Shown here: positions 9,801 through 43,177 of the stretch, in pieces
Layout of the letters: the number at the start of each line of letters is the position of its first letter
Position numbering within the stretch: position 1 is the stretch's first letter
NCBI RefSeq assembly: GCF_006345805.1
Contig: NC_043004.1
Location: 75,640,001-75,704,000, forward strand
Reading direction: 5' to 3'
Source of the DNA: Octopus sinensis
Lineage: Eukaryota
Length of the DNA stretch: 64,000 nt
Notes under the pieces: model-generated
What the model saw: only the letters and a program-made list of their open reading frames with translations
What the model was told of the DNA's origin: nothing
Databases searched by the model: none
Made by a program: the position numbers and the translations under genes

Positions 9801-12800
9801 CTGAAAGAAACAGTTTTTAAATTTTCACTCCATTCAGGTACCAATTCATTTTCTTTATCGCTGTCGGAACTCTCGGATTCACTGCTTTCATTTTCGGAAA
9901 ATGAAACATCGGATTCATTATCAAATACCACGTGCTTTTTTTTTTTTCAGTCATAGAGTTAGATTTATGAAGGTCTTCAGTAGAAAATCCTTCGAATTCT
10001 GACTCGCTGCTTGATATAATGAAATTCGTATCCATTTTTTGTCAGAACTACAAATTTTGAAAACACAATAGGAACAAATTTCGGAAAAAAATCTCCCAAA
10101 ATTCACGGAATTAAAATTACACTTCGATCGTTGTACAAAACTGTAGATGAACTGTTTACGAAGTATAATCACGTGTTTTCACGAATGTACTAAAGAGATT
10201 TGCTCTGATATTCTCATTTAAATATGAATAGCTAATTACGGGCAGCTTGGTCACATGAACCAAAATTTTTTTCGGGCGGCTTTGGACGGTTTGGTAACGA
10301 AAGGGTTAAAAACTGTATTTACCAGTAAATAAGAGACACTCTTGCACAAGACACCCCCCTATTTTACAAGTATATTTGGTGAGGAAAAAAATACAAATTT
10401 AGCAAGTTTTATCATATATCTATTGAAATATATAGTTTAACCCTTTTGATACCAACCCAGCTGAAACTGCCTCTGGCTCTGTAGTACAAATGTCTTGTTC
10501 TCAAAAGTTCTAGGTTAAAATCTTCCATCAAAAGTTAGTCAAAATTTATGTTTCTAACACTAGCTTAATGATAACTGAGTTATTTTACTAAATTCTTCGT
10601 TACATTTCAAATTAATTGAAAGAAATACAGCATCTCAACAGAAATATGGTAACAAAAGGGTTAAAGTGGTTTTGTTGAGGAAATGTGCATGGAAATACAA
10701 TGCTGTGACAAATTACTGGGATAAAATATGAAACCATAAATTTATCCTATACAAGAACCAAATTTCAATTCTTTTTTTTAGATCAGCTGTAGAGCTGTTT
10801 ATATTTAGATCGAGGGAATTTCCATACAGAATGTAAAACTCGTATTTCTGGCTGTGGCATTTTGTATTACTGTGATCAATGGCCACCAGAGTAATGCATC
10901 ACAATTGTGGCTTTTGTTTTCATCCACTCACTGCAAATACCCGACAGGCAGATGAAAGTTTAATGTTCCTTTCATTTTTCTGGGAGAGTTTTCATTTAGA
11001 TTATAAAAACAATTGTTAAGATAATAAACGTTAAATAATGACACATATCAAGTGAGTGTTATGTATGATCGTGAAGCAGCTATACTGTAACCACTAGATA
11101 TACTGTAACCGCTGATATACTGTAAGCAGTTTTCATAGCTGTGGGAATTTGGCTTGTTAGCTTTGCCTTAACGAAGGCAGAGGTATTGTTTTCAGTTGTG
11201 TTTGTTTGTTTGTCCATGGACAAGATATCTCAAGAACCACTGCATGGAAACTTCCAGGAAGGTTTGGTCTCATGACTGGCACTGATTAGATTTTAGGATC
11301 GATCCGGTACCGAAAAAGGATTCTAGATTATTTTTCCTGTTTTTTTTCTCTTTTTTTTTACTTAATTTTTGAGAGCAGTCAGGTTCATTTTTAGTGTTCT
11401 TGTTTGTGAGAGCAGTCAACTTTATTTAGATATTCTCATTTTAAAAATCATCTCTGGCTAACCGTTGAGAGGACGTTGGTGTTGCCTTGGTAGAGGTTTG
11501 CACTCTTTGAGTGCTCTTGTTTTTAATATTTCATCATCATTAGTTTTTAATACTTTATTCTTATTATTAAATCAACCCCAAATACTTAATCCAACTGCAT
11601 CGGATACAGAGCAATGTTTTGATACACTTAACAAGACAAAAATAAAACCCGTCTTATACACAGGCAGATATGCTATTTAAAAAAGTAACCCTTGAAAAGC
11701 AGTTTATCAATGTACAAACCTGTGACTTTCTTCTCTGAATCATCGTAGTTGCTGGATGTCAAGAGATGTCCAAATATCATGGTTGGTACGTACATTTTCT
11801 CAGTCTTGTGTTCAACAACAGGAATTCCTTTACCATTGTTCCAGATTTTAATCCGATTGTTTTCACTGAAATATCAAAATCAAGACCTGAAATCTACTGC
11901 AGAAAGTAATATACAAGAGAATCATACACAGCATTAACTTAATCTTACACATCACTTCAAACCATCCTGGCTTGAACCAGCAAGGAGTCACTATGAGATA
12001 GGTGACATTTTGGCACAGCTGTTCCGTCCCCACCTATTTGTCATCATTCAACACTGACTTCATCATCATCGTTTAATGTTCGCTTTCCATGCTAGCATGG
12101 GTTGCACAATTTTGACTGAGGGCTGGCGAACCAGACGGCCACACCAGGCTCCAATCTCATCTGGCAGAGTTTCTACAGCTGGATGCCCTTCCTAATGCCA
12201 ACCATTCCGAGAGTGTTGTGGGTGCTTTCTACGTGCCACTGGCACAGAGCCAGTCAGGCGATACTGGCAATGACTTCGCTCGAATCTTTTTGCACAGGTG
12301 CCACTAAGGCGACGCTGGTAACAATCACGCTCAAATGGTGCCCTTTTACATGCCATCGGCACGAAGCCATTTGGCTGGTCTGTCAACCAACTAGCACAGG
12401 CACAAGTGCCAGTAAGGCGACGCTGGTAACGATCACACTCAAATGGTGCCCTATTATGTGCCACTGGCACGGATGCCCGTTAGCCACTCTGTCAACGAAA
12501 AAATGTGTGTAGTGGCTAACGATCTATCATGGCGTCTGACTTGGACAGAAGGGTCACACACCATATATATTTACACACATACCGACACAGGCTTCCACAC
12601 AGTTTCCATCTACCAAATTCATTTACAAGGGATTGGTTGTAGCCCAGAGCTATAGTAGAGAAAACACGTACTCAAGGTTCCACACACTGGGAATGGACCC
12701 AAGACCGCGTAGTCGCAAGAGACCTATTTAGCCACAGAGCCATACTTATACAACTGTGACATTAGGCAGTTGTTTAAATTTAACTTTGAGCAAGAGGAGA

Positions 12801-14200
12801 AAGAAAAGAATTTGAAATGATTGCATGTAAAACTTACGAATCAATATCAATCTTGATGGTATTCATTTTGGAATCTCGTTGGGTGTTTCTGCTGCATTTA
12901 CTAGAAAAGAAATGGGAATGAAAGATAATTACTAATAATTCAAACTAAATAATTTAAAACAAGCAACAGAAAAAAATAGCAGACTAATATATGTTCTATA
13001 TTTAAGTCTCTGTTGCAAGAGAGTAGGTTTATAAAAGGGGGAGTTTAAATTATATGAACAAGGGATATGAGCTAGAAGATTGAGAAGGAACGAAAGGTTG
13101 TTACCAGCCATATGACAGAGAGTGTCATCAAGAGGTTTAGCACAATGTAGAAAAGGAAAAATACTGAAGGAAGGAAGGACCCGAAGACTGCACTCCACTC
13201 CAATGATTGTAGCCTGGCAGGAAGTTGGCAATCCAAGAAATGATGAGATCTAGACCACAGGCAACCAAATCAGGTTTAATATTAGATGCAGTGAAGATTT
13301 TGCAGATATCAAGTGTAATAATATTGCTTTTGGCAAAATCCCAAAGACTAATGGTCACTGGTGACATAAAGGAGGAAGTTTCCAGTAGATCTGGCTCTAT
13401 GGAAATCAAACTTGTGATCACTGGGGGGAAAAAAAAAGAGGCTGAAAGAGACGAAAGACGTGATTATTCCATGCTATATCAGGCCCAAATATTCTACGTT
13501 TTATATTCAAGTTGGCCAGATCCGCCTCTCACACCTACTCTACGATATCATTCTAAAAATAAACACATGGAAACCTCAGAAATGAGACAATGCATGATTA
13601 ATTCAAAACAATGTGAATAAATAAGCATTACACTTGACAGAATAATCTAAAATGCTGACATGTGATTGAGTGTGGGAGAAGAAGGGGACTAAAATCGCGG
13701 GATGCGTTTTAGAAAATTTTGAGAGAAAAGAAGGTGATAGAAGGATCTTTCCTTAGCAATTCTAGGGTCATTGCCAGAAGTTAATGGAATCTTGTACAAT
13801 TAGCAAGTTGTGTTTTCAACATGGAACAGGGTGTACGTGTGGTGGAGGCAAAAACATGGGACCAAGTCATAGCTATATATGGTTATGAAATTCTGAATTA
13901 TGTTGGTAACTCGGTCAGTCAGTTTCAGGGAGTAGCAGCAACTTGGGCATACTGTCTGTTTTGAAAAAAACTCTGATCACGAATATAAAATCGTACTGTA
14001 TTCTTGACTTTCTCATATTCATTTATTACAGTTAGTACCTCGTTTAATTTCTTTCTGGTGTATCTTTGTTGAAGAGCGTGGCTCGAAAACGTAAAAGATT
14101 TGTTTTATTTATATTCCTGAGCGCCATACTAATACATTTGTTGTTTGTATTCCACCTGCCTTCGTCTTTTTTTATTTTCATAAAGCTTCCCGTTATATAT

Positions 14201-14248
<48 letters not shown>

Positions 14249-17200
14249 GGGAGAGGTTACGAAAAACACAAAAAAGACAAGACAGGTGGTGTACAAAACA
14301 AACAGATGTATTAGTATTACGCTCAGGAATAGAAAAAGTCTTTTACGTTTTGAGCCTACGCTCTTCTACAGAAAGGGACACAGAAAACAAGGAGAGAAAA
14401 AAATGTGTGTAGTGGCTAACGATCTATCATGGCGTCTGACTTGGACAGAAGGGTCACACACCATATATATTTACACACATACACGACAGGCTTCCACACA
14501 GTTTCCATCTACCAAATTCATTTACAAGGGATTGGTTGTAGCCCAGAGCTATAGTAGAAAACACTTACTCAAGGTTCCACACACTGGGACTGGACCCAAG
14601 ACCGCGTAGTCGCAAAGAGACCTATTTAGCCACAGAGCCATGCTTATACAACTGTGACATTAGGCAGTTGTTTAAATCTAACTTTGAGCAAGAGGAGAAA
14701 GAAAAAGAATTTGAAATGATTGCATGTAAAACTTACGAATCAATATCAATCTTGATGGTATTCATTTTGGAATCTCGTTGTTTGTTATCTGCTGCATTTA
14801 CTAGAAAAGAAAATGGGAATGAAAGATATAATTACTAATAATTCAAACTAAATAATTTAAAACAAGCAACAGAAAAAAATAGCAGACTATATATTGTTCT
14901 ATATTTAAGTTCTCTGTTGCAAGAGAGTAGGTTTTATAGAAGGGGAGTTTAAATTATATGAACAAGGGATATGAGCTAGAAGATTGAGAAGGAACGAAAG
15001 GTTGTTACCAGCCATATGACAGAGAGTGTCATCAAGAGGTTTAGCACAATGTAGAAAAGAAAAAATACTGAAGGAGGAAAGACCAAGAAGACTGCACTCC
15101 AATGATTGTAGTCTGGCAGGAAGTTGCCAATCCAAGAAATGAGAGCTCTAGACCACAGGCAACCAAATCAGGTTCTAATATTAGATGCAGTGAAGAATTT
15201 TGCAGATATAAAGTGTAATAATATTGCTTTTGGCAAAATCCCCAAAGACTAATGGTCACTGGTGACATAAAGGAGGAAGTTTCCAGTAGATCTGGCTCTA
15301 TGGAAATCAAACTTGTGATCACTGGGGGGAAAAAAAAGAGGCTGAAAGAGACGAAAGACGTGATTATTTCCATGGCTATATCAGGCCCAAATATTCTACT
15401 TGTTTTATATTCAAGTTGGCCAGATCCAGCCTCTCACACCTACTCTACGATATCATTCTAAAAATAAACACATGAAAACCTCAGAAATGAGACAATGCAT
15501 GATTAATTCAAAACAATGTGAACAAATAAGCATTACACTTGACAGAATAATCTAAATGCTGACATGGAAGTTGGTTGAGTTGGGAGAGAAAGAAGGGGAC
15601 AAAATGCAGCATGTTTTTAGAAAATTTTTGAGAGAAAAATGGGATAGGTTGATGAGACGAAGTGCCAATTCTAGGGTTCATTGCCAGAAGTTAATGGAAT
15701 CCTTGTACAATTAGCAAGTTGTGTTTTCACATATGGCAACAGTGTGTACGTGGTGGCAAAAACATGGGACCAGTCATAGCTATATATGGTTATGAAATTC
15801 ATTTTGTAACTCCGTAGCTCAGTTTCAGTGAGCAGCAACTTGGGCAACTGTCTTTTACTTATACCCTCAAGAGAACCAAATTTTCTGTGAGCAAAGTTAA
15901 TAGATGGAAACTGCATAAGTCTATCAAAGAATCCATAGCTGCCCTTGACTGCTAGATATAATCCATCACTTGGTTTAACACAACCACCAGGTCCTTGGGA
16001 GCATTTCACTGTATTGCAAGTACGTAAGTCAGGTCCTCAGCATCAGGATGACTTCCTCTCTACCTACCACAAGTCTCAAAGGCACTAAAAAGGGCCATGG
16101 GCATGATATTACTATAGTGGATATGAAGGGATAAAGCACTCAGAGGTCTCAGGTTTTGGGTTCTGTCAGTTATATGCAAGGGTCATCTATTTTCAGTCAC
16201 CCACTAAGTTCTCTCAAAGGTAAACATTTCCGCAAACAGTGGCACTGTATAATGCAAAAGTACAGTTGGAAACAGCACATTGAGAGAAACATTATTCACA
16301 AACAAGAGATCTGCCCGAAGACCTGTGACAGGGTGGTTTCTCTTAACCCTTTAGTGTTCAGATTACTCTGTTAAATGTAATACTTTTTCACTCAAATTGT
16401 TTCGGATTAATCCTGGATTATCTTACAGCTTTGAGGTTTCAATGATGTGATTGTTTATTTTTAGAATGGCATTGTAGGTTAGGAGTGAGAGGTTAGATAT
16501 CGCCAGTTTGAATATAAAACATGTAGAATATATTGAGCCGGATTTGGCCGGTTTAAACACTAAAGGGTTAAAGGCACTCCAAGGACCACAAGATAAACCA
16601 GTTCATGTGATAGGAAATTTTTACAAACAATCTGTATTACACACAAACAGAGTCATATATACAAAGTATACTTTTTCTTTCCTCCAATTATTACTATATT
16701 AGCAAGGAATAAATAAATAGGGATCAAATCAAAATACTCACCAAGAATTTCATCAAATATTTTATAGAGACCAGGAACAAAGGAAATTTCTCGTTGTACC
16801 ATTGTTGAGAGGTCTTCATCAATCACCCACATTTGCTGAGGAGGAGGAGAAGCAGAATTGCATAAAATAAATATTAAATTCTTACAAAATTATCTGCTAT
16901 AGACAAAATATAATGAACAAAATAATTCTAACAATACCCACATAAATAATTGAAATTACCATACTCAATGGCATAAAAGGTGCACAGGTATGTTAGACAC
17001 ACCAATTTCAGCAGTGTATATAAAGGAAAGAGTTTTTAGTGTATAGAAATATGTGATAAAGGTCAGACTTGACATGTAGAACTCAAAGTGAATTTTTGAG
17101 ACATTTAAAGAAAAAAAAAAAACGTATATTTTATATAGCATGTTGTCAACTTAATGCGACAGTCCCATAAAAGGTAAGAATGCTACTGTTATTAAGTTGA

Positions 17201-20200
17201 CAACATGCTATCACTTTATCATGCTGCTACTGCATAAATCTCTCTCGGAGATTTAGAAATATATTATTTCTATTTTATATGTCATTAAATACAATACAGG
17301 TATTTTATGAGAGCCCCTTAAAAATATCTGATCATACTGAAAAATTAATATAACCAGTCTTTTCATTAGAAATCATCATCATCATTTAACGCCCGCTTTC
17401 CATGCTAGCATGGGTTGGACGATTTGACTGAGGACTGGCGAACCAGATGACTGCACCAGACTCCAATCTTCGACGGGATTTTGAATCCAGAATGTAATGG
17501 TTTGACAACCTTCAATTTATCATTGTTTATATGGATTGAACAGAGTTTATGGAGGCAGATTTTCTGTGGTCAGATGTCCTTTCCATTGGCAAGCACATCT
17601 GTTTCCAAGCAAATTTATGCAGAATATTGGAAATAAGTGACATTGCTTGTATACTGGTGTCACACAACTAGCACCCATTACACTCTCAGAGTGGTTATTG
17701 TTGTTAAGAAAAGCATCCAGCGGTAGAAACCATGCCAAATCAGACTGGAGTCTGGTGCAGCCCCTCAGCTTACCAGCCCTGGTCAAAATTCATCCAACCC
17801 ATGCCAGCATGGACAACAGATGTTAAATGATGATGATGCTGTGATGCCAAAATAAGCATACACACACACACATATATATACAATGGACTTCTTTCAGTTT
17901 GTCTACCAAATCTATTCACACGGCTTTGGTTGGCCCAGAATTGTAATAGAAAATATACCCAAGGTTCCGTGTTGTGTGGGACTGAACCCAAAACCATCTG
18001 GTTGGAAACAAACACCTCAACCACACAGCCATACCCACACCTACCAGCCTTTCATAATAAAAGACCAATAATAATGGGTTCCTTTCTTAGTAACTGAAGT
18101 ATTCGAGGGAGAGAATCAACCTTTTTTTCTTTCTTCTTTTATCAATTAACTTTCTTTTTCCAAGAAATTATCAAAATTTGTGCATGTGAATATTTATAAT
18201 TTGCAGAGAAATACGCAGCAGATAGTGACTGCAATGTTTGTGCTTGGGCTGCAACCAGAAACATTCTTTGTCATTTCCTGTCAAATTGCCCACCAACTCT
18301 GCACCATCGAATTCCTCCAGAATTAAAACAGAGACAAGAGTGGCTAACAGACCATCCGGTTTTGGAAAAAAAACGTACCTCAAACACCACATCTAATTCT
18401 TGCTAGCTAGGAAAAACAGATGATAAATAAACAAATTGTGTTGTGGATGTGTGTTTGTATTTGTATAAATGTAATTAATTGTTTCCTTGGGGGTTCGCAC
18501 CTGTAAGCTGCATGGCAATCTCATTGGTGCTGATGCATGGAAAAAGCACCCAATACACACTGTAAAGTGGCTGACATTAAGGAGAGCATCCAGTCATAGA
18601 AACCATTCCAAGGTAGACGGTGGAACACAGTGCAATCCTGGGGCTCAAGACCCTGTCACACCATCCAACCCATGGCAGCATCAAATATGAACTTTAATTA
18701 ATGGTAATGATGATGGTATTGCACGGGGAGAAAAGAGAAGTTATTTTTATGCTCAAGTGCCCTTTATCAGAAGTCTCTATCCTTCAGTTTTTTATAACTT
18801 TGCTGTCCCAGAGTAAAGACCCCCTTCGGTCATGAACGACCATGAGATTGCATCTAGAAAGTTACCTCCAAGGCACAAGTCCAGGCAAGGTTGCTTATAG
18901 AAGACCAGCAATTGCCCATGCAAGCCAGCCTTCACCTCTCCACACCACCAATGTTATCCAAGACAATGGCAAAGGCTGATACAGCCTGGCACCATCTCTA
19001 CAGTCGAGTGAACTGGAGCAACATGAAATAAAGTGGCCTGCTCAAGAACATAGCATACAGCCCAGTCCAGGAATGAAATTCATTACCTCATGATTGTGAG
19101 ACTGATGCTCTTACCACTGAGCCATGTACCTTAAGCCATTAATTTAGTATTTGTGCATCCTCCCACAAAGTTCTCCGAGCACCTGGACCACCAAATTGAC
19201 TGGGTGACTAAAACACACTGATGCCTCTTCAACACCAACATTCAGTTGTCTTACATGGGAAGCATCTCCTTGTCGCATTAACAGACCAGAAATCTCTCAA
19301 AGTTAGTTCTAATTTTTGACATGGAAGTCAAGAACTTTTTTTTTTAAGGTCTTCCACAGCAAACTGGCAAAGTCCTTCTAACATCAATAGAACATCTTAC
19401 ACTATTTGGTTCTTTGTCCTTAGATCTTTCTGATCTGCCTCAACGAATTCCATCTGGCCCATTGCAAACATCAGAAAGTGGACATTAAATCAATGATGAT
19501 GAATTGTTTAGATTTCTTATATTAAAGTTCTTGAAAATAACAACAAGAGCACTCAGAGAGCACAAACCTCTGCCAAGGCAACGCCAACGTCCTCTCAATG
19601 ATTAGCCGGAGATGATTTTTAAAATGTGAATATTTGAAATAAATTTGACTGCTCTCACAAACGAGAATACTAAAAATGAATTCGACCGCTCTCAGAAATT
19701 AAGTTAAAAAAAAAAACAGTAAAAAAAACTAAAATCCTTGTCTGGTAACGGATCAATCCCAAAATCTAATCAGTTTGTGCCAGTCACAAGGCCAAACATC
19801 CCTGAAAATTTTATCAGAATCCATCCAGTGGTTCCTGAGATATCTTGTCCATGGACAAACATACAAACAAATGCGACTGAAAACAATACCTCCACCTTCA
19901 CTAAGGCGGAGGTAATAAAAATGCTTTCTATTATAGGCATAAGGCCTGAAATTTGTGGGGAGGGGCTAGTCAACTACCTCAACCCCAGTGTTAAACTGGT
20001 ACTTATTTCATCGACCCTAAAGGGATGGATGAAAAGCAAAGTCAACCTCAGTGGAATTTGAATTCAGAAAATAAAAACAAATGGAATGCTAAGCATTTTG
20101 TCCGGCATGCTAACACTTTTTCCAGTTCACCATCTTATTCATTATCACAAGTACTTGTACTTGCAACAGCGTTCACCCAGGGCAGGTTGAGCCGGCTTCT

Positions 20201-22450
20201 TCTCTGGTCCCAACGGCATCACGAACCATGGTGGCCCATGCGAGGTCACTGGAGATAGCAAGCCATTTGCGGTTCCATCTGCGCAGACCGACCACCTGTG
20301 GACCTGATAGTTCGGAGAGGTCCTCCTTTATAGTCGTTGCCCAGGTCTCCAGCTGTCCGCCCGTGCATCTGCGGCCAGCTGGGAAGTGGAGGTGGGAGGA
20401 GGATATCGCGAATCAGCTCACCCTCATTGAACATCCATTGTCCATGCTGGCATGGGTTGAACAGTTTGACCGGGGCTGGTAAACAGAAAAGCTGCACCAG
20501 GCCAGTCTGATTTGGCAAACGCTATTATTATTGTTATCAATAATAATAATAATAATCCTGTCTGCTATAAGCACAAGGCCTGAAATTTTGAGGGAAGGGA
20601 CCAGTTGATTACATCAACCCCAGTATGCAACTGGTATTTATTTTACTGACTCCAAAAGGATGAAAGGTAAAGTTGATCATGGTGGACTTTGAACATGAAG
20701 ACAGACGAAATGCCGTTAAGCACTTGGTCAGGGACACTAACAATTCTGCCGGCACCCCATCTTAATAATAACAATGCTGGTTTGTAAGAGACATAAGGCC
20801 TAAAAGCTTAAAGGACTGGGTTTCTTGAATAAAAAGCTACAGCTACAAATCCAAACTCTGATATACAGTGCCAAACTCTTGGACAAGACACTCATTCTCA
20901 TCATCATCGTTTAATGTCCACTTTCCATGCATACATGGGTAGGACAGTCAACAGGAGCCGACCAGGTAGAAAATCTACCACTCTGCAGAATGGACTCAGT
21001 GCTTTTTATGTGGTACTAGCACAGGCGAAGTTAGTTTTGGCAAAATTTTTACAGCTGGATGCCTTTCCAGATGCCAACAGTGTGACTGGATGCTTTTAAC
21101 ATGGCACCAGCACTGGCAGGGTCACCAAGGAACTCACAAGACAAGGAACTTCGAGAGGGGCAGAGCATTTCTGTCAGAGGATGAAAGACTCAAATGTGAC
21201 AAAGAGACAGCAGCAGAGGGGGCATTAGAGGAAGTGATCCAGTATCAATTCCAGTCAACTTCACATACATTTATTATTATTACCTCCACCTTAGCAAAGG
21301 CGGAGGTATTGTTTCTAGTCATGTCTGTTTATTTGTCCGTGAATAAGATATCTCAAGAACCCCTGGATGGAATTTGATGAAACTTTCAAGGATGTTTGGC
21401 CTCGTGACTGGCACAAACTGATTAGATTTTGGGATCAATCCAGTACCGAAAAAGATTCTGGATTATTTTTCTTGTTTCTTTTACTTAATTTTTGAGAGCC
21501 GTTGGGTTCATTTTTAGTATTCTCATGGGAGCAGTCAAGTTTATTTCAGATATTCTCATTTTAAAAATCATCTCTGGTTAATCAATGGTGTTACTTTGGT
21601 GGAGGATTGCACTCACTGAGTGCTTGTTAGTAAATTGTTTTTAATTAACTTAACCTCCAGCTGATACACATTTTAATAAACGTAAATTCCTTGATGATGA
21701 AAGAGATAATTAAAATACCAAGATACATCACAGTAATCCACGCAAACACAAACAAAGAAATGTTAATTGGCTTCCTCTTCAAGAAGCCATAACTGAGATA
21801 TATTTCACAAAAGCTGCATTAGGATTTTCCACCCCCACCTTAGTTTTGGAACTAAACAAACATTTTATTCTTTTCTACTCTAGGCACAAGGGACAAAATT
21901 AGATCGACCCCAGTACACAACTAGTACTTAATTAATCAACCCCGAAAGGGTGAAAGGCAAAGTCAACATCGTCAGAATTTGAACCCAGAATGTAAAAACA
22001 GATGAAATACCTATTTCTTTATTACCCACAAGGGGCTAAACACAGAGGGGACAAACAAGGACAGACATAGGTATTAAGTCGATTACATCGACCCCAGTGT
22101 GTAACTGGTACTTAATTTATCGACCCCGAAAGGATGAAAGGCAAAGTCGACCTCGGCGGAATTTGAACTCACAACGTAACGGCAGACGAAATACCACAAA
22201 GCATTTCGCCCGGCGTGCTAACGTTTCTGCCAGCTCGCCGCCTTCTAAACAAACATTTTATTGAATGACATACCTGAGTGTGAAGTTGGACTGATCCAAT
22301 ATATGTGTCAGGTCGCAACAAGATGTGCTCCAACTGACTTTTCTTCTGGTAAATCCTCTCAACTGATAATTTCTTATTGGTCTTGGTGGTACCAATATCC
22401 CCACTTGCTTTCTTCTGCTTGTCATTCTCTTTAACATTGTTAAAGAGGGT
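823..22450 (-). CDS. top2: DNA topoisomerase II (type IIA, eukaryotic), N-terminal ATPase/transducer region; spliced join of 9 exons (22274-22450, 16742-16835, 14737-14800, 11720-11865, 7289-7386, 6403-6615, 4234-4407, 1448-1549, 823-960); partial at both ends
   Basis: Exon lengths 177+94+64+146+98+213+174+102+138 = 1206 nt (402 codons), all GT-AG with compatible phases. The translation contains the Top2 motifs KLSVERIYQKKSQLEHILLRPDTYIGS, FVPGLYKIFDEILVNAADNKQRD, WNNGKGIP, TSSNYDD, GGRNGYGAKLCNIFS, FVNSIATTKGGRH and ENPTFDSQTKENMT. Confidence 0.97.
1448..1549 (-). CDS. top2: top2 exon: GGRHIDHVSDPLVNKIIEVVKKKNKGGLNIKPFQ
   Basis: Acceptor ttttgtgatAG and donor CAA|GTAAGT; 102 nt, phase 0/0. 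Confidence 0.95.
1830..2490 (-). mobile_element. Cluster of three tandem copies of the same tRNA-derived SINE
   Basis: Repeated gatgaaaggcaaagtYgacctc..agaatttgaactcagaa and gctaagcatttt blocks at about 1950, 2170 and 2400. Confidence 0.8.
2491..2856 (+). repeat. 26-bp minisatellite, about 14 copies (aattctacctgYtggtcacctttaaa)
   Basis: aattcta recurs every 26 nt from 2491 to 2828, contiguous with the end of a SINE. Confidence 0.97.
2926..3141. mobile_element. Tc1/mariner MITE (216 bp)
   Basis: TA flanks; roughly 26-bp TIR caaggggatgctgaaaagttcctggc with 2 mismatches. Confidence 0.85.
4234..4407 (-). CDS. top2: top2 exon: VKNFKDYVDLYVKDKVDDAGQPFKVIYESVSDRWEIAVTISDSGFQQASFVNSIATTK
   Basis: Acceptor gtgttgcAG and donor AAG|GTAAAG; 174 nt, phase 0/0. 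Confidence 0.96.
6403..6615 (-). CDS. top2: top2 exon: TWTENMLNASEPVITESRADDFTAITFCPDLPKFQLESLDKDHVALFCRRAFDIAASTRGVKVILNGKRVP
   Basis: Acceptor aattttctAG and donor CCA|GTAAGT; 213 nt, phase 0/0. Confidence 0.96.
6830..7030 (+). ncRNA. GC-rich structured segment with two CTGAnGA and three GAAAC hammerhead-like half-cores (probably PLE-derived)
   Basis: CTGAAGA at 6836-6842 and CTGATGA at 6918-6924; GAAAC at 6898, 6976 and 7013; several complementary stems. Confidence 0.4.
7289..7386 (-). CDS. top2: top2 exon: (G)GRNGYGAKLCNIFSTKFIVETSCQEYKRAFKQ (ATP-lid glycine loop)
   Basis: Acceptor ttttactacAG and donor CAG|GTAATG; 98 nt, phase 1/0. Confidence 0.96.
8240..8790 (-). mobile_element. Penelope-like element 3' fragment: GIY-YIG endonuclease C-terminus, tRNA-like module, broken hammerhead and an inverted terminal piece
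   Basis: ORF 8481-8678 WDEVEIIDGEHQWKIRKLKEAAHML...LSRPS resembles PLE GIY-YIG C-termini; flanking sequence is shared with 32540-32830. Confidence 0.75.
8882..10305 (-). mobile_element. Internally deleted piggyBac-like transposon with N-terminal transposase remnant
   Basis: TTAA at 8878-8881 and 10306-10309; perfect 12-bp TIR ccctttcgttac. Frameshifted acidic N-terminus (SESEFEGFS; ESSESESSDS; FSEETGP) and LFEIITAETNCYA...TTLKEIKAYFAINIIMGIRKLP, typical of PGBD-type transposases. Confidence 0.85.
9223..9680. repeat. 161-bp tandem repeat (about 2.8 copies) of transposase coding sequence
   Basis: gggtaactttctgatac recurs at 9223, 9384 and 9545. Confidence 0.92.
10441..10660. mobile_element. 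piggyBac-type MITE (220 bp)
   Basis: TTAA|cccttttgatacc...ggtaacaaaaggg|TTAA; an inverted copy of the same family is at 23904-24123. Confidence 0.85.
11160..11522 (+). mobile_element. Helentron/HINE-like non-autonomous element (other copies 19542-19917 minus and 21279-21628 plus)
   Basis: 5' hairpin tacctccRccttagc(a)aaggcggaggta (clearest at 21281), short (gttt)/(gtct) repeats and a 3' tgcactctctgagtgctcttgtt end shared by the three copies. Family assignment is by resemblance. Confidence 0.6.
11720..11865 (-). CDS. top2: top2 exon: ENNRIKIWNNGKGIPVVEHKTEKMYVPTMIFGHLLTSSNYDDSEKKVT(G)
   Basis: Acceptor gatatttcAG and donor CAG|GTTTGT; 146 nt, phase 2/1. Confidence 0.96.
12838..12900 (-). pseudogene. 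Duplicated, frameshifted copy of the NAADNKQRD top2 exon (pseudo-exon or assembly artefact)
   Basis: Same splice sites as 14737-14800 but 63 nt instead of 64; reads (V)NAAETPNEIPK-stop. Confidence 0.85.
12990..13440 (-). mobile_element. Degenerate non-LTR retrotransposon RT fragment (second copy at about 14920-15370)
   Basis: Broken frames SLWDFAKSNIITLDICKIF...ISWIANFLPG and PLDDTL resemble the LINE RT segments xLDISKAFD...SWIxxFL and ADD. Confidence 0.5.
14055..14390. mobile_element. Inverted pair of Penelope-like termini around a (TA)n tract, with degenerate minimal hammerhead motifs
   Basis: The right arm reads on minus cttt-CTGTAGA-A-GAGC-gtag-GCTC-AAAA-CG-TA-aaag; the left arm reads gaagagcgtggctcgaaaacgtaaaaga; a related piece is at 51550-51585. 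Confidence 0.6.
14737..14800 (-). CDS. top2: top2 exon: (V)NAADNKQRDSKMNTIKIDID(S), the in-frame copy
   Basis: Acceptor ttcttttctAG and donor TC|GTAAGT; 64 nt, phase 1/2; carries the ATPase N-box Asn. Confidence 0.95.
16347..16567. mobile_element. piggyBac-type MITE (221 bp), an abundant family in this window
   Basis: TTAA|ccctttagtgtt...aacactaaaggg|TTAA, perfect 12-bp TIR. Confidence 0.88.
16742..16835 (-). CDS. top2: top2 exon: QMWVIDEDLSTMVQREISFVPGLYKIFDEIL
   Basis: Acceptor ctcctcctcAG and donor TTG|GTGAGT; 94 nt, phase 0/1. Not in the ORF track; found by manual translation. Confidence 0.96.
17135..17211. repeat. Perfect 21-bp inverted repeat forming a 77-nt hairpin
   Basis: atagcatgttgtcaacttaat (17135-17155) and attaagttgacaacatgctat (17191-17211). 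Confidence 0.92.
20148..20428 (-). mobile_element. RTE LINE 3' fragment (different family) with (CAAGTA) tail
   Basis: Frameshifted ELIRDILLPPPLPSW..GGQLETWATTIKEDL..GP..GLRRWNRKW..SDLA..EAGST.PG-stop, then gttgcaagtacaagta. Confidence 0.7.
22011..22243 (-). mobile_element. Young tRNA-derived SINE (Deu/Nin-like central domain) 30 bp into the intron after the first identified top2 exon; adjacent older copy at about 21855-22010
   Basis: B box GTTCAAATTC; central gcctttcatcctttcggggtcgataaattaagtacc; CpGs retained. Confidence 0.8.
22274..22450 (-). CDS. top2: top2 exon (equivalent to vertebrate exon 2): TLFNNVKEND...KKLSVERIYQKKSQLEHILLRPDTYIGSVQLHTQ
   Basis: Acceptor ttctttattctcAG and donor CAG|GTATGT; 177 nt, phase 0/0; no ATG in the exon. 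Confidence 0.95.
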
Positions 22451-24338: not shown

Positions 24339-26027
24339 ATTTATTAATTATTATTATTCTGATCCCCCTAGTCGCCACTCTGTTTACTATTTCAGCCTCG
24401 CCTCGCCTCGTTTTGCATATTCTGTATAATTCACTAGTTATCGTTATTGATATTTTAAGATCTATCTCCCTTATAGAAATTGGCTGCCGATTCTTCGCGG
24501 GGTTTTTCTTTCTCTTCCCTTCTCTCCCCCTCTTGTTACATTGTCGTCTGTCTGGACTCCTCTCTTCCTACCACCCGCCATGGCTATGCATACTTAAGCT
24601 AGTAAAATGCCTCATTCTTGATTCCGAATTCCTTTTGCCAAGTCTGTCCGTAAACGAAGTGATCTCAAGATAAGAAATCTTTGAACTTTAATTCATCCGT
24701 ATCTCTATTTATTATTATTATTTATTAATTATTATTATTCTGATCCCCCTAGTCGCCACTCTGTTTACTATTTCAGCCTCGCCTCGCCTCGTTTTTTGCA
24801 TATTCTGTATAATTCACTAGTTATCGTTATTGATATTTTAAGATCTATCTCCCTTATAGAAATTGGCTGCCGATTCTTCGCGGGGTTTTTCTTTTCTCTT
24901 CCCTTCTCTCCCCCTCTTGTTACATTGTCGTCTGTCTGGACTCCTCTCTTCCTACCACCCGCCATGGCTATGCATACTTAAGCTAGTAAAATGCCTCATT
25001 CTTGATTCCGAATTCCTTTTGCCAAGTCTGTCCGTAAACGAAGTGATCTCAAGATAAGAAATCTTTGAACTTTAATTCATCCGTATCTCTATTTATTATT
25101 ATTATTTATTAATTATTATTATTCTGATCCCCCTAGTCGCCACTCTGTTTACTATTTCAGCCTCGCCTCGCCTCGTTTTGCATATTCTGTATAATTCACT
25201 AGTTATCGTTATTGATATTTTAAGATCTATCTCCCTTATAGAAATTGGCTGCCGATTCTTCGCGGGGTTTTTCTTTCTCTTCCCTTCTCTCCCCCTCTTG
25301 TTACATTGTCGTCTGTCTGGACTCCTCTCTTCCTACCACCCGCCATGGCTATGCATACTTAAGCTAGTAAAATGCCTCATTCTTGATTCCGAATTCCTTT
25401 TGCCAAGTCTGTCCGTAAACGAAGTGATCTCAAGATAAGAAATCTTTGAACTTTAATTCATCCGTATCTCTATTTATTATTATTATTTATTAATTATTAT
25501 TATTCTGATCCCCCTAGTCGCCACTCTGTTTACTATTTCAGCCTCGCCTCGCCTCGTTTTGCATATTCTGTATAATTCACTAGTTATCGTTATTGATATT
25601 TTAAGATCTATCTCCCTTATAGAAATTGGCTGCCGATTCTTCGCGGGGTTTTTCTTTCTCTTCCCTTCTCTCCCCCTCTTGTTACATTGTCGTCTGTCTG
25701 GACTCCTCTCTTCCTACCACCCGCCATGGCTATGCATACTTAAGCTAGTAAAATGCCTCATTCTTGATTCCGAATTCCTTTTGCCAAGTCTGTCCGTAAA
25801 CGAAGTGATCTCAAGATAAGAAATCTTTGAACTTTAATTCATCCGTATCTCTATTTATTATTATTATTTATTAATTATTATTATTCTGATCCCCCTAGTC
25901 GCCACTCTGTTTACTATTTCAGCCTCGCCTCGCCTCGTTTTGCATATTCTGTATAATTCACTAGTTATCGTTATTGATATTTTAAGATCTATCTCCCTTA
26001 TAGAAATTGGCTGCCGATTCTTCGCGG
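24339..26027. repeat. Tandem array of a 381-bp unit, about 4.4 near-identical copies
   Basis: ctgatccccctagtcgcc recurs at 24359, 24740, 25124, 25505 and 25886; the last copy is cut at ttcgcgg (26027). Confidence 0.97.
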
Positions 26028-26934
26028 CGCGCCCGCCCTACCCACCCCCACCACCAATACCGGATATCTCTATTTTGCTCCAACTATACCGGATGTCGTT
26101 TTTCTCCCACCACCATTATAGGTGTCTACTCTTTGAACCCCCTCTTCAATACGCTATTTCACCATGCATTACCCCTCTCTCGATATCCTACGTTCTACTT
26201 GCCTAGAACCTGTCCTCTGGACCACCCCTCCCACTGGTGCTCACCCCTCCCACTGGTGCTCCCCTATATTTCTGCATCCCCCCACCACCATTATAGGTGT
26301 CTACTCTTTGAACCCCCCCTCTTCAATACGCTATTTCACCATGCATTACCCCTCTCTCGATATCCTACGTTCTACTTGCCTAGAACCTGTCCTCTGAACC
26401 ACCCCTCCCACTGGTGCCCACCCCTCCCACTGGTGCTCCCCTATATTTCTGCACCCCCACCACCACTATAGGTGTCTACTCTTTGAACCCCCCTCTTCAA
26501 TACGCTGCTCCCCTATATTTCTGCACCCCCCACCACCATTATAGGTGTCTACTCTTTGAACCCCACTCTTCAATACGCTATTTCACCATGCATTACCCCT
26601 CTCTCGATATCCTACGTTCTACTTGACTAGTACCTGTCCTCTGAACCACCCCTCCCACTGGTGCTCCCCTATATTTCTGCACCCCCCCCATAAAAAGCAC
26701 CATCCGAACGTGGCCGATGCCAGACCCCTCTGGCACCTGTGCAGGTGGCACGTAAAAAACACCCACTACACTCGCGGAGTGGTTGGCGTTAGGAAGGGCA
26801 TCCAGCTGTAGAAACACTGCCAGACTAGACTGGAGCCTGGGGCAGTCCCGAGCTCCCCAGACCCCGGTCGAAACCGTCCAACCCGTGCTAGCGCGGAAAA
26901 CGGACGTTAAACGATGATGATGATGATGATGATG
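26028..26934 (+). mobile_element. Non-autonomous element: C-rich head, internally amplified core of about 175 bp, RTE-type 3' tail with (GAT)n
   Basis: Head gcgcccgccc and core are shared with 39452-39950; the 3' end aaccgtccaacccgtgctagc..ggaaaacggacgttaaacgatgatg matches the tail of the LINE at 41177. Confidence 0.8.
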
Positions 26935-29900
26935 GTTCTTTATCATTACTAGCAAGATACAGCTGGTAATAAAATATTTGTGTGAAAAGTAAGAAAGTCA
27001 CTTGAAATTTTCTATTACCAAATTTCTAGTGAGATATTCAGCATAAGCTTGGGATGCTGCCACTTGCAACGAATATTATAAATACTTAACTGGAAATAAC
27101 GATAGAACTACCCTTAATTAATGATAGATAAACATTTCTAATCTCTACCTATCACGATGTTAACATTGCCAGTTCTTTTCTTTTTTTAAGATTGAATTCT
27201 TTTCCTGTGGGCTCCCCAACCCCCAAAGCATCTACAATTCCAATTCTATGTGCATCATGTTTCTAAAAAGGGCCAAATTGGGACTTGTTGAGGTGGATTT
27301 TCTACTACTGAATGCCCTTGCCTTCACCAACCCTCACCTGTTTCCAAGTAAGGTAATATTTCTCCATGACCAGACATCCACAGTAGTGAGTTGTACTGTT
27401 TACTTAGAGGTAAGCAGTACAATGTATACCAACAAAACAGGTCACTATCACCAAATGGCCACTTAACCTGCTAAAAATAGCAGTCAAACTTCTCTCAAAC
27501 TGCATAAGTTTTAAAAAGGACACATTAATTAGATAATGTAGTTTGGAGTGTACACAATTCCTGATAAAGACCTTTGTTCATAGAGCCAATCCACCAGGAA
27601 TCATAAATAACAATAACCTGTGGTTGTGTGATTAAAAGGCTTGCTTGCTAACCAAATATTTTTTTATTATAGCCCTGAGCTGACCAAAACCTTGTAAATC
27701 AATATGATAGACAGAAAGGAAAAGAAGCCTGCTCTCTCTCCTCCACTTCTCTTGACACCACGTGATGGGTGTAAACAAACGTCAATGTCATACAAGCAAG
27801 GTTGTTTGTTTTCAGTTTCCTGTGAGAAATGTCTGGGTGAGGGAAATATTACTTAGCTTGGAAAGTTGAGGATTGGCAACAGGAAAGGCATCCAGCCATA
27901 ATCTGCCTCAACAAAATTCATCCAACCCATTCAAGCATGGAAAAGTGGATGTTATGATGATGGTGTGATCATGTGGTATGGAGCTTGCTTCCCAACCACA
28001 TAGTTCCAGGTTCAGTTCCACTGCATGGCACTTTGAGCAAGTGTCTTCGACTATAGCCTTGGACCAACCAAAGTCTTGAAAGTGGATTTGGTAGACGGAA
28101 ACTGAAAGAAGCCTACCATGTGTGTGTGTGTGTCAGTGTTTGTCCACCACCAGTGCTAGACAGCTGTGTTTACATCCCCAAAACTTATCGGTGCAGCAAA
28201 AGACACCAATAGAATAAGTACTAGGCTCAACTGAGAAAAAAATAAGTCCTGGGATCAATTCATCCAACTAAAAATTCTTCAAGGGACTGCCCCAGTATGG
28301 CCATGGTCTAATGACTGAAACAAGTAAGAAGAAAGAAAATAAAAAAAAATTTTAATTTCCAATCAATTTTAATAAATTGCAAAAAAAAAAAAAATCATGA
28401 AAAATATTTCCAACTTCCGGAATCACTTAATGAGCAGACATTACAAGAACTCATTTGAAAAGCAAGATGTACAAGCTGTTGGCAGCTTAGTTGTGTGTGC
28501 TTACAGTGTAATGTAATATTTACAATGCAAATATATTTATTAATACTGATGACAGTGTAATTCAATATGTTACATGTAATCTTAAGTCAGCAATAAACGA
28601 AGTGTCGAGGGAGAAGTAGTAACTTCACAACTAATTTTATTTGCTTTCAAATCATATCACACAAGTGGTGACAAGAATAGAGGAGAAAATATGCTTCTGG
28701 CAAAGCAGATCAGTAACTAAATTTTAAATTCTGGTTGAAGATCCCAAATACACAACTGAGGTAACATTAAATTAAAATAGCTTCTATGTATCATACTTAA
28801 TATATTGATAGGCCAGTTACTGCTCTAATTGTCCCGAGATAACCTCGATGACGCTTACTAGTTCTCAGTCAGACAGTCCAACCCATGCCAGCATGGAAAA
28901 CAGACATTAAATGATGATGACAATGATGACTCCATATCAAATAATATTCAGTTCCATTTACTGCAGGTCATTCAGAGAGAGGGACATGTCTTTTGACTAT
29001 GTGGATGTGTGCATTGATAATTCACAAATTTTTAATTGAAACAGCAGTGAATGGTCAGTGTAACAATTCAGAACAAGTTTTAATTAATAATTAGTACATG
29101 TAGCCTTGCTTATTACTGATTCATTCACCACAGATTGATTTTTCATGACACAGGTACGCAATTTGTCAAAGATACTGGTTGTACTGCAAGCATGCACCCC
29201 AGAAGCTACCCATAATGCTCAGCTGCACAGGTCCAAGGACTATCATCATCATCATCGCCATCGTTTAATGTCCGCTTTCCATGCCGGTATGGGTTGGGCA
29301 GTTTGACTGAGGACTGGTGAGCCAGAGGCTACATCAGGTTCCAATCCGATCTGGCAAAGCTTCTACAGCTGAATGTCCTTCCTAACACCATAGTGGGTGC
29401 TTTTACATGACATCGGCACAAGGGCCAGACAAGTAGTTCTGGCAATGACTACACTCAAAAGGTGTTTTTTACGTGCTACCTGCACAGGAGCCAATCCCCG
29501 ACCCTGGCCCTAGCAACGATCACATTCGGACGTGTGTTTAACGTTCCACTGGCACGAGTGCTAATCAGGCGGCACTGTCATCAGCCATGTCAGCGATTCT
29601 GATTTGTTTTCATTTGCCTCAATAGGTCTTCACAAGCAAAGTTTATTGCCCAATGAATGAGGGGTACTCATAAGTGGGCCGGTAACACCCCACGTTCGGA
29701 TGTGTGTTTAACGTTCCACTGGCACGAGTGCCAATCAGGAGGTACTGTCATCGGCCACTCACTTGTGTTATGAAGCTATGTATATTTGCTATGGATTTAC
29801 ATACTATCATACTCGTCAAAATGGGATGAGCGAACAGAAAATATCTAAAGGGATCTGCTCCTAACAAACAATGCAGATGAGTGTATTCTCTACAGGAACA

Positions 29901-39049: not shown

Positions 39050-39159
39050 CACACCACCGCAAAGCATTTCATCTCAATCCTGTCTTCTTTCTGCCGCCTA
39101 AAACCTCATCTCCCAATTCTCTCTCTCGCTATGTGGTGTCGGTTCTCCCTCTGTTTTCA

Positions 39160-39207
<48 letters not shown>

Positions 39208-39451
39208 ATATATCTCACCTTCACTCGCTTCCGCAGGATGAAAAATCATCAGCTAAGTTCCCGACCTGTTTCCTCTTTTCATTGTTTTTGCAAGCCTTAT
39301 TATCCCCATCTAATAGCGTTATCGTTGTCTTTCGTCTCAAATGCTAGCTGAAGCATAAAAACTTTCACTCACAAAAACTTATTCACACCACCGCAAAGCA
39401 TTTCATCTCAACCCTGTCTTCTTTCTGCCGCCTAAAACCTCATCTCCCAAT
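39050..39451 (+). repeat. 68-bp direct repeat (39050-39117 and 39384-39451, one mismatch) around a (CT)n-containing spacer
   Basis: cacaccaccgcaaagcatttcatctcaa.cctgtcttctttctgccgcctaaaacctcatctcccaat occurs twice, 334 bp apart. Confidence 0.92.
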
Positions 39452-39950
39452 GCGCGGTGCGCCCGCCCTCCCACCCCCACCACCAATACCGGATATCTCT
39501 ATATGTTGCTCCATCTATACCGGATGTCGCTTCTCCCACCACCATTATAGGTGTCTACTCTTCGAACCCCCCTCTTCAATACGCTATTTCACCATGCATT
39601 ACCCCTCTCTCGATATCCTACATTCTACTTGCCTAGAACCTGTCATCATTTCTCTGAACCACCCCTCCCCACTGGTGCTCCCCTATATTTCTGCACTCCC
39701 CCCCCCACACATAAAAAGCACCATCCGAACGTGGCCGATGCCAGACCCCTCTGGCACCTGTGCAGGTGGCACGTAAAAAGCACCCACTACACTCGCGGAG
39801 TGGTTGGCGTTAGGAAGGGCATCCAGCTGTAGAAACACTGCCAGACTAGACTGGAGCCTGGGGCAGTCCCGAGCTCCCCAGACCCCGGTCGAAACCGTCC
39901 AACCCGTGCTAGCGTGGAAAACGGACGTTAAACGATGATGATGAATGATG
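39452..39950 (+). mobile_element. Second copy of the same non-autonomous RTE-tailed element (single core unit)
   Basis: The last roughly 230 nt are nearly identical to 26690-26920 (two substitutions seen by eye); same head. Confidence 0.8.

Positions 39951-43062: not shown

Positions 43063-43064
<2 letters not shown>
41177..43064 (-). mobile_element. Young 5'-truncated RTE-clade LINE with 3' UTR and (GAT)n tail
   Basis: Open RT frame 43064-41763, then about 590 nt of 3' UTR ending in (ATG)n at 41177; both ends sit in microsatellites. Confidence 0.93.
41763..43064 (-). CDS. RTE reverse transcriptase, C-terminal part (about 433 aa), with an inserted C4HC3 PHD-like finger
   Basis: Motifs FVDMEKAFDRVPR, GVHQGSVLSPLLF, LLYADDL, FRYLG, LRWYGHVARM and GRGRPRKTW. 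The ORF-track N-terminus (MLFTQ...YIYIYI) is read-through of microsatellite. Confidence 0.93.
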
Positions 43065-43151
<87 letters not shown>

Positions 43152-43177
43152 CAGACAGAGTTGAGTAAAGAGCATAA

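Follow-up and report, generated by a model that had tools for sequence, protein, structure and literature searches.

In octopus, three retroposons lying within a single 64-kb window (the whole stretch of DNA that was analysed) each adjoin, at their 5′ end, a partial tandem duplication of local DNA, the last unit of which breaks off precisely where the element begins. These elements, termed A, B, and E3, have in common the tail of a LINE family that is itself present in the window. The window contains four long-period duplications of non-element DNA, and three of them adjoin a retroposon 5′ end in the correct orientation, the number of element-adjacent duplications expected by chance being 0.015 (P about 6e-7). 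Coincidence between duplications and element 5′ ends is excluded, and a mechanistic tie between the truncated duplications and the element 5′ end is supported. The best explanation, with a probability of roughly one half, is the templated copying of upstream flanking DNA while the 5′ end of the insert was being joined, with expansion of the array following later at locus A.

Elements with a common LINE tail

Two of the elements, A (26028-26934, + strand) and B (39452-39950, + strand), are members of one family of non-autonomous retroposons. Element B, which lacks internal duplications, consists of a 256-bp body and a 243-bp LINE-derived tail with (GAT)n-like repeats at its end. In element A, the body is C-rich, specific to the family, and internally duplicated; it is followed from about 26689 by a LINE-derived tail of about 240 bp and a (GAT)n end at 26934-26935, which corrects the position noted earlier. 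The greater length of A relative to B is due to about 3.3 tandem copies of the segment that matches B positions 84-257 (26106-26690, + strand; TRF and alignment); these units are about 96% alike. This internal tandem duplication has CCCCACCACCA-like motifs at its bounds and ends where the body meets the LINE tail.

The partner LINE, putatively of the RTE type as labelled in the original prediction, is present in the window as a 5′-truncated copy (41177-43063, − strand) whose ORF contains an RVT_1 domain and, downstream of the reverse transcriptase (RT), a PHD finger. Over its last ~240 bp, this LINE has 85-87% identity with the A and B tails. With a 3′ end in common with an autonomous, RT-encoding LINE of the same genome, A and B are LINE-dependent retroposons; as dispersed copies, two in number, they have (GAT)n short-repeat tails, a common 5′ end, and unrelated flanks. 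ARAGORN detected no tRNA-like sequence in the element head, Rfam gave no matches to the head at E-values up to 10, and the A/B family should not be filed as a canonical SINE. Candidate target-site duplications (TTCTT, ATCATT, TTTAC, and AG[A/T]CAGT) are 5-7 nt long, differ in placement, and fall within chance expectation.

A protein search with the open frame spanning the head returned no match, and a 23-mer of the head is absent from metagenome and viral contig collections. Ten ORFs of the window, including those that span junctions and units, are absent from the protein collection, as is the LINE ORF, and Pfam detected no domains in nine further ORFs. Beyond the window, other copies were sampled at one 21-kb O. 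vulgaris locus (L001), which was found through a search with the LINE protein. This locus holds 5-6 copies with the same tail, none of which has the A/B head and none of which has a flank duplication.

The third element, E3 (12060-12497, − strand), is distinct from A and B apart from the tail that it has in common with them. It is composed of LINE 3′-UTR-type subrepeats, the conserved tail, and GATGATGATGA. Its 5′ end is probably at 12496/12497, a placement derived from its homology with a single other copy and from the boundary of a subrepeat.

Truncated duplications at the element heads

At locus A, the element is preceded by a tandem array of non-element DNA (24339-26027, + strand), in which TRF and self-BLAST identify a 381-bp unit present in 4.43 copies (4.4 copies with 99% matches as reported by TRF). 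The array is laid out as (P162 Q219)x4 + P162, that is, four units each made up of a 162-bp segment P and a 219-bp segment Q, then a final partial unit that stops at the head of element A. By self-BLAST, no difference separates units 1, 3, 4, and the partial unit 5 (162 bp) from one another. Unit 2 differs solely by indels in T-runs, and there are no substitutions between units of the array. At the junction with the element (junction J2), sequence and alignment place a CGCGG microhomology at 26023-26027 (+ strand), which the array unit has in common with the element head.

At locus B, self-comparison (repeat family D17) shows that a 68-bp segment, P1 (39050-39117, + strand), recurs as P2 (39384-39451, + strand) at a spacing of 334 bp, with 67 of 68 positions identical. 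The two copies are separated by a 266-bp segment Q (39118-39383, + strand) that contains (TC)21. Locus B therefore reads P-Q-P followed by the element, a duplication of 334 bp in 1.2 copies, and P2 ends exactly where the head of element B starts.

In the alignment of A with B, homology sets in at CGCGG[C/T]GCGCCCGCCC (A, 26023-26028; B, 39452-39453), and the head of the family reads gcgcccgccct[a]cccacccccaccaccaataccggatatctc. Since this homology begins at the same point, both arrays stop at one element position; the flanks of these two copies of the family are unrelated to each other. Both heads carry a G4 motif on the minus strand, namely G5-T-G3-TA-G3-C-G3 at 26032-26049 (plus-strand CCCGCCCTACCCACCCCC), 4 nt from junction A, and G5-T-G3-A-G3-C-G3 at 39462-39478 (plus-strand CCCGCCCTCCCACCCCC), 10 nt from junction B. 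A regex scan for the canonical motif (four runs of at least three G with loops of 1-7 nt) recovers both, along with a third that lies inside A (26402-26428), as the only instances on either strand of the 64-kb window. A fold predicted with the G-quadruplex option and RNA parameters likewise places a G4 at both heads. The element RNA is the C-rich strand; therefore, any G4 would be confined to the cDNA or the minus DNA strand. Much of the original prediction is borne out by these results, as it had described a last repeat unit cut at both junctions, a common start of A and B (the same nucleotide within 1-5 nt in the A/B alignment), the CGCGG microhomology, and a minus-strand, four-tract G4 with loops of 1-2 nt at both heads.

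E3 adjoins a duplication of 1.9 kb in 1.77 copies (12498-15856). The proximal copy P (1463 bp; 12498-13960, − strand) abuts the 5′ end of E3 at one end and cuts an old SINE copy at the other. It is followed by a 437-bp segment Q (13961-14397, − strand), which is mainly a foldback (14052-14386) with (TA)n at its centre, and by the distal copy P′ (14398-15856, − strand). P and P′ are 92.3% identical over 1497 columns, and the repeated segment is ordinary DNA carrying nested old SINE fragments. The old SINE copy (15819-15913) that is cut in the proximal copy continues uninterrupted through the outer boundary of P′. Thus, the distal unit is original DNA, and the copy on the side of the element is derived. 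The last ~40 nt of P were considered as a part of E3 itself and set aside, their similarity to the subrepeat not being significant (p = 0.18).

The sample of flank duplications comprises these three loci, all within one window. The P copies are derived from the flank, as they match the upstream segments at 100% (A), 98.5% (B), and 92% (E3). Divergence between duplicates is 0% at A, 1.5% at B, and 7.7% at E3, an order that is plausible with element age. A 161-bp array at 9219-9701 was rejected as a fourth case because no element with this tail adjoins it.

Origin of the duplicated flanks

A, B, and E3 would have been mobilised by the LINE family seen at 41177-43063; its 3′ stem region and (GAT)n tail are common to all three. 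In each case, the 5′ end of the insert would not have been joined straight to the upstream break end. From a putative pre-insertion state X-P-Q-R, the 3′ end of the first-strand cDNA, which is the complement of the head, may have annealed by microhomology to exposed upstream DNA at a site 219-437 bp from the break, a distance that would correspond to segment Q. The cDNA would then be extended on the upstream DNA by 68, 162, or 1463 nt to form a copy of segment P, after which the extended end would dissociate and be joined to the break end. The product of these steps, X-P-Q-P-element-R, would be a partial tandem duplication with its last unit cut exactly at the element head. We infer that strand invasion and extension, together with the polymerase used for them, would belong to the insertion event itself. 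The P-Q-P layout cannot be obtained from one simple tandem duplication. The element junction of locus A has the CGCGG microhomology, and the Q|P junctions have similarity in (ATT)n-like sequence or T-runs; microhomology is weak at the element junctions of B and E3.

At locus A, (ATT)n-like sequence at both unit ends would permit out-of-register re-annealing or unequal exchange, through which 1.4 copies could have expanded to 4.4. The units of the A array are identical, whereas the internal repeats of element A are about 96% alike; thus, the expansion, at least, may postdate the insertion considerably. In addition, normal joining may be impeded at A and B by their G-rich, G4-prone cDNA end, which would favour flank copying but is not required for it.

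It has also been considered that the duplications arose after insertion through a G4-driven replication error, which is unlikely. In this case, the minus-strand G4 would block the nascent plus strand slightly left of the motif, and the stalled end or break would be mended by microhomology-mediated templated synthesis that inserts a copy of upstream DNA. In C. elegans lacking the dog-1 helicase, rearrangements occur at G4 sites with one breakpoint at the G4 flank, and repair by polymerase theta leaves templated inserts. The octopus loci resemble such fork rearrangements with polymerase-theta end joining in having a breakpoint a few nucleotides from a G4, microhomology, and flank-templated copying. 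Measured leftward from the first C-tract, the distance to the junction is 4 nt at A and 10 nt at B, where stalling on a G-rich template is expected, and motifs of this kind are scarce, with three in 64 kb. The lack of substitutions in the A array is also compatible with a recent event independent of insertion. Flank duplication accompanies 2/2 G4-headed copies and 1/26 other copies with the same tail (p = 0.008), a post hoc comparison with n = 2 that is confounded with full-length status and with age. However, a regex scan of both strands of the 64-kb window finds no G4 motif in E3, which has the identical architecture; therefore, the G4 is not required. Known events induced by G4s, including those of the dog-1 type, delete the motif, whereas it is intact at both octopus loci. 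The junction also coincides with the first nucleotides of the element, so that G4 and 5′ end are inseparable at A and B. The G4 had originally been cast as the driver that would make this element a recurrent generator of local duplications. E3 adds a third instance to the recurrence, and these insertions do look like recurrent generators, but the G4 is not supported as the cause.

The elements may alternatively have inserted into, or been preferentially retained in, arrays that already existed, with each insertion removing what was left of the unit it interrupted and all that lay downstream. LINE insertions are well known to be accompanied by target-site deletions, and element-free arrays with fractional copy numbers exist in the window, such as the 161-bp array mentioned above. 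However, this origin is decidedly unlikely, as it needs three independent coincidences in a window of which long-period arrays make up about 4-9%, as well as three deletions that each removed the unit completely from the 3′ side, and the duplications at B and E3 have merely 1.2 and 1.77 copies. None of the three elements has a right flank with significant similarity to the remainder of its unit, and therefore simple insertion into a pre-existing array does not fit. When the flanks were joined into empty-site constructs according to three models, none of the constructs matched another repeat copy across its junction.

A foreign template would make the array new cDNA that was inserted together with the element. 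The RT would jump at the RNA 5′ end to another RNA of 381, 334, or 1900 nt, either circular or a lariat, and copy it in a rolling circle, the mode of reverse transcription that has been proposed for retrozymes. In metazoans, tandem repeats of 150-450 bp are known that give rise to circular RNAs, with non-LTR elements as their presumed means of mobilisation (PMC7229834). Non-integer copy numbers, identical units, and the homopolymer indels at A would follow naturally from this route, which also accounts for the presence of unrelated arrays at different copies. It is nonetheless very unlikely, since the old SINE that runs across the distal boundary of the E3 array makes the distal unit resident DNA and not inserted cDNA, and no convincing target-site duplication surrounds array and element together. 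Rfam detected no ribozyme families in the arrays at E-values up to 5-10, with no hammerhead or other ribozyme in any unit at E-values up to 10 and none at the gathering score across the window. In contrast to metazoan hammerhead retrozymes, the octopus units are locus-specific and do not form a dispersed family.

It is highly improbable that the A array or its copy number results from long-read mis-assembly. Units that are 100% identical are the type of sequence whose copy number assemblers miscount, but the copies at B (98.5%) and E3 (92%) are diverged and cannot be artefacts, the microhomology at junction A is specific, and mis-assembly would not put array ends at element heads. Scarcely credible is the other possibility raised in the original prediction, that the arrays are the element's own 5′ promoter monomers: they do lie directly 5′ of the element body, in tandem at A, as the monomers of the non-LTR element L1 do in mouse, but mouse monomers are family-specific and common to all copies, whereas the octopus arrays are different local DNA at each locus, mutually unrelated and without further copies in 85 kb (the window and L001), B having 1.2 units only and E3 a 1.9-kb unit of ordinary DNA with nested SINE fragments and ancestral context at its far end.

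Implications and comparison with known systems

Templated flank copying would bear on the completion of the second half of target-primed reverse transcription, which is still poorly understood. It may be suggested, tentatively, that in octopus genomes the insertions of this LINE family regularly resolve their 5′ ends by copying hundreds to thousands of upstream bases, that the resulting tandem duplications can be expanded to minisatellites or satellites, and that a G4 cDNA end raises the frequency of such events. New tandem repeats would then arise directly and recurrently from retroposition. Were this to hold genome-wide, two major classes of repeats would be linked, as LINE and SINE insertion would also seed expandable duplications, 0.3 to about 2 kb long, of the adjacent host DNA. 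This would show concretely how locus-specific minisatellites can be born in a genome with very high SINE and LINE activity, and the known "extra nucleotide" class of 5′ junctions would be lengthened by two orders of magnitude.

Among known systems, the flank copying proposed here is probably best explained as a much enlarged form of two phenomena, the 5′ extra nucleotides of L2-clade LINEs and the rearrangements of R1. In the zebrafish L2-clade LINE ZfL2-2, a large fraction of the 5′ extra nucleotides is derived from the flank, which has been attributed to annealing during 5′-end joining (PMC4245944). The octopus loci are similar to ZfL2-2 and ZfL2-1 in that extra sequence copied from the nearby flank lies between the upstream target and the 5′ end of the insert, and the proposed route would likewise involve annealing and polymerisation during 5′-end joining, with microhomology. 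In octopus, too, the partner LINE and its non-autonomous elements have in common a stem region and a 3′ tail of short repeats. However, the extra nucleotides in zebrafish number "several" (PMC4245944), whereas the octopus copies measure 68, 162, and 1463 bp. In addition, the octopus copies are taken from 0.2-0.4 kb upstream and make a tandem segmental duplication, one of which is now a 4.4-copy array.

The "insertion site rearrangements" of R1 are duplications of 16-27 nt of upstream 28S sequence at the 5′ junction, and upstream 28S duplications are also found at the 5′ junctions of R2 (Stage and Eickbush, 2009; PMC2718515). As at the octopus loci, upstream target sequence is duplicated at the 5′ junction of a non-LTR retrotransposon, with microhomologies or untemplated bases at the joint, and the duplication is ascribed to the mode of priming of second-strand synthesis. 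The R1 duplications differ in being limited to 16-27 nt at a fixed rDNA target and in being partly explained by co-transcribed 28S sequence, whereas the octopus elements occupy non-specific sites and duplicate far longer segments.

Retroposons A and B and their partner LINE

At about 38% G+C the window is AT-rich, and it is dense in retroposon debris; its one long ORF has its top protein matches in Octopus vulgaris and O. bimaculoides. Two non-autonomous elements of one family, A (26028-26934) and B (39452-39950), lie on the plus strand, each built of a C-rich family-specific body (42% C), a ~240-bp 3′ module, and a (GAT)n-like tail. The ~240-bp module shares 85-87% identity with the 3′ end of a 5′-truncated LINE on the minus strand (41177-43063), whose ORF encodes a PHD finger as well as a reverse-transcriptase domain. 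About 20 more copies in the window have the tail alone in common with these elements. Homology between A and B starts at CGCGG[C/T]GCGCCCGCCC, and A is longer because the equivalent of positions 84-257 of B is repeated ~3.3 times within it between CCCCACCACCA-like motifs. Since neither tRNA-like nor other known RNA was detected in the head, A and B are named LINE-dependent retroposons, not canonical SINEs.

The body/tail boundary is also the end point of A's internal duplication. Tandem subrepeats of 63-170 bp, in variable number, lie directly upstream of a conserved ~170-bp tail in LINE 3′ UTRs and truncated copies, both in the window (41337-41690, 12292-12499, 29521-29757, 48979-49257, and 56272-56451) and in L001, a 21-kb O. 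vulgaris locus (11451-11664 and 16441-16661). In this family, therefore, sequence immediately 5′ of the tail seems to have a general tendency to duplicate in tandem.

A SINE-like unit of ~220-235 bp also recurs in short clusters, two or three units head to tail, at several window loci (1922-2496, 19913-20764, and 21898-22243) and in L001 (8163-8769), and a 26-bp x 14 minisatellite (2487-2856) adjoins one of them. No Rfam family reached its gathering score over the whole 64 kb, and ARAGORN reported no tRNA in the window despite >20 SINE-like copies. The SINE heads in the window are either too diverged or not tRNA-derived.

Duplications at element 5′ ends

A 381-bp x 4.43 array (24339-26027) directly adjoins A on the left; its units are identical except for T-run indels in unit 2, and the last one stops after 162 bp. 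At B, a 68-bp repeat occurs at 39050-39117 and 39384-39451, 334 bp apart and 67/68 identical, and the second copy ends at the element head. The sequence CGCGG at 26023-26027 is common to the array unit and the head of A. The original prediction had described these truncated tandem repeats and this microhomology, and all of its features for the two loci were found where it placed them.

Window self-comparison for local direct repeats revealed one further long duplication, in which 12498-13960 recurs at 14398-15856 (92.3% identity, period of 1900 bp, 1.77 copies). At position 12498 the proximal copy meets the 5′ end (12496/12497) of E3, a different minus-strand element that carries the same tail (12060-12497); homology to one L001 copy and a subrepeat boundary define this 5′ end. 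Both copies of the duplicated segment are ordinary DNA and contain nested fragments of other interspersed repeats. An old SINE copy, matched by three independent family members, spans the distal boundary unbroken (15819-15913), while its counterpart in the proximal copy is cut. This makes the distal unit resident ancestral DNA and the element-adjacent copy the derived one.

Most of the spacer at this locus is a 335-bp foldback (14052-14386) with arms ~78% complementary and a (TA)n center. It resembles a MITE or foldback element, and its miRNA-precursor-like matches in Rfam are weak and below threshold. Where the flank duplication joins the E3 5′ end, a perfect inverted repeat of 10 bp, GTTAGCCACT / AGTGGCTAAC, spans the junction (12475-12520, minus strand). 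Its element-side arm differs from the matching subrepeat of the following unit, and the inverted repeat may reflect either chance or a snap-back templated patch.

Four long-period duplications of non-element DNA occur in the window (at 9219, 12498, 24339, and 39050), and three of them terminate only a few bases from a same-tail element's 5′ end, in the correct orientation. For the 22 elements taken into the test, 0.015 coincidences are expected, and three were reached in 0/200,000 simulations (Poisson P about 6e-7). The tie between duplication and element 5′ end extends to three loci. No element with this tail adjoins the fourth array (9219-9701; 161 bp x 2.9, first two units 96% alike), beyond which lies a 20-bp x 2.2 repeat (9724-9766). 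In L001, the sole other octopus locus compared, none of the 5-6 same-tail copies has a flank duplication.

Locus architecture and alternative origins

All three loci are arranged as X-P-Q-P-element-R, where X and R are flanks, P is the duplicated segment (162, 68, and 1463 bp at A, B, and E3, respectively), and Q is the spacer between P copies (219, 266, and 437 bp). No convincing target-site duplication was found.

Four-tract G4 motifs with loops of 1-2 nt lie on the minus strand at 26032-26049 (A) and 39462-39478 (B), confirming by both-strand scan the motif predicted at both heads; only three such motifs occur in the 64 kb, and the heads account for two of them. Folding with a G-quadruplex option also puts a G4 at the heads (RNA parameters, indicative only). 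The motif is conserved between A and B, with junctions 4 nt and 10 nt away, respectively. As the RNA of the element corresponds to the C-rich strand, a G4 is possible only in cDNA or minus-strand DNA. Normal joining could plausibly be impaired by a cDNA end that is G-rich and prone to form a G4. The duplications at A and B may alternatively have arisen from a replication stall after insertion. Flank duplication accompanies 2/2 G4-headed copies versus 1/26 other same-tail copies (p = 0.008), a post hoc contrast confounded with age and full-length status. However, E3 shows the same result with no G4 motif on either strand, and at A and B the motif is kept, not deleted, which argues against the G4 as necessary. 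Thus, of the proposal that a G4 causes stalling, re-priming, and local duplication, the link to the 5′ end is upheld and the G4 as cause is not.

Origin of the whole array as inserted cDNA from circular RNA is argued against by the old SINE spanning the distal E3 boundary. Because the 3′ flank R does not significantly resemble the remainder of the unit at any of the three loci, plain insertion into an array already present is excluded, barring three independent deletions of the missing part. P-Q-P needs two new joints, Q to P and P to element, which a single simple tandem duplication of unique sequence cannot supply. Element-borne promoter monomers, the alternative in the original prediction, are ruled out because the array units are mutually unrelated and have no further copies in 85 kb, as are hammerhead retrozymes (PMC7229834), because a ribozyme search found none in any unit.

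Probable flank copying during 5′-end joining

Copying of the flank during 5′-end joining is the most likely mechanism, and we infer its timing relative to insertion. In target-primed reverse transcription, the cDNA 3′ end is the complement of the head. This end would anneal through microhomology (CGCGG at A) to upstream DNA exposed 0.2-0.4 kb away from the break, be extended on it to copy P, and then be released and joined to the break end. At A, (ATT)n-like sequence at both unit ends would favor repeated rounds of annealing out of register or subsequent unequal exchange, with growth from 1.4 to 4.4 copies. The duplications have diverged by 0%, 1.5%, and 7.7% at A, B, and E3, which would fit three insertions that differ in age.

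Microsatellites occur at the partner LINE and at locus B: (TA)21 and (AG)28 (43064-43160) directly abut the 5′ junction of the partner LINE and supply the start of its 470-aa ORF, and (TC)21 lies within Q of locus B (39163-39204). These may be target features or junction products.

In zebrafish, L2-clade LINEs carry flank-derived extra nucleotides at their 5′ ends, for which the same pathway has been proposed (PMC4245944); the octopus loci differ in scale and in the tandem segmental duplication generated. The 'insertion site rearrangements' of R1 are similar but span 16-27 nt (PMC2718515), compared with 68-1463 bp at the octopus loci. What is new here is very long flank-derived 5′ junction sequence that would seed tandem arrays.
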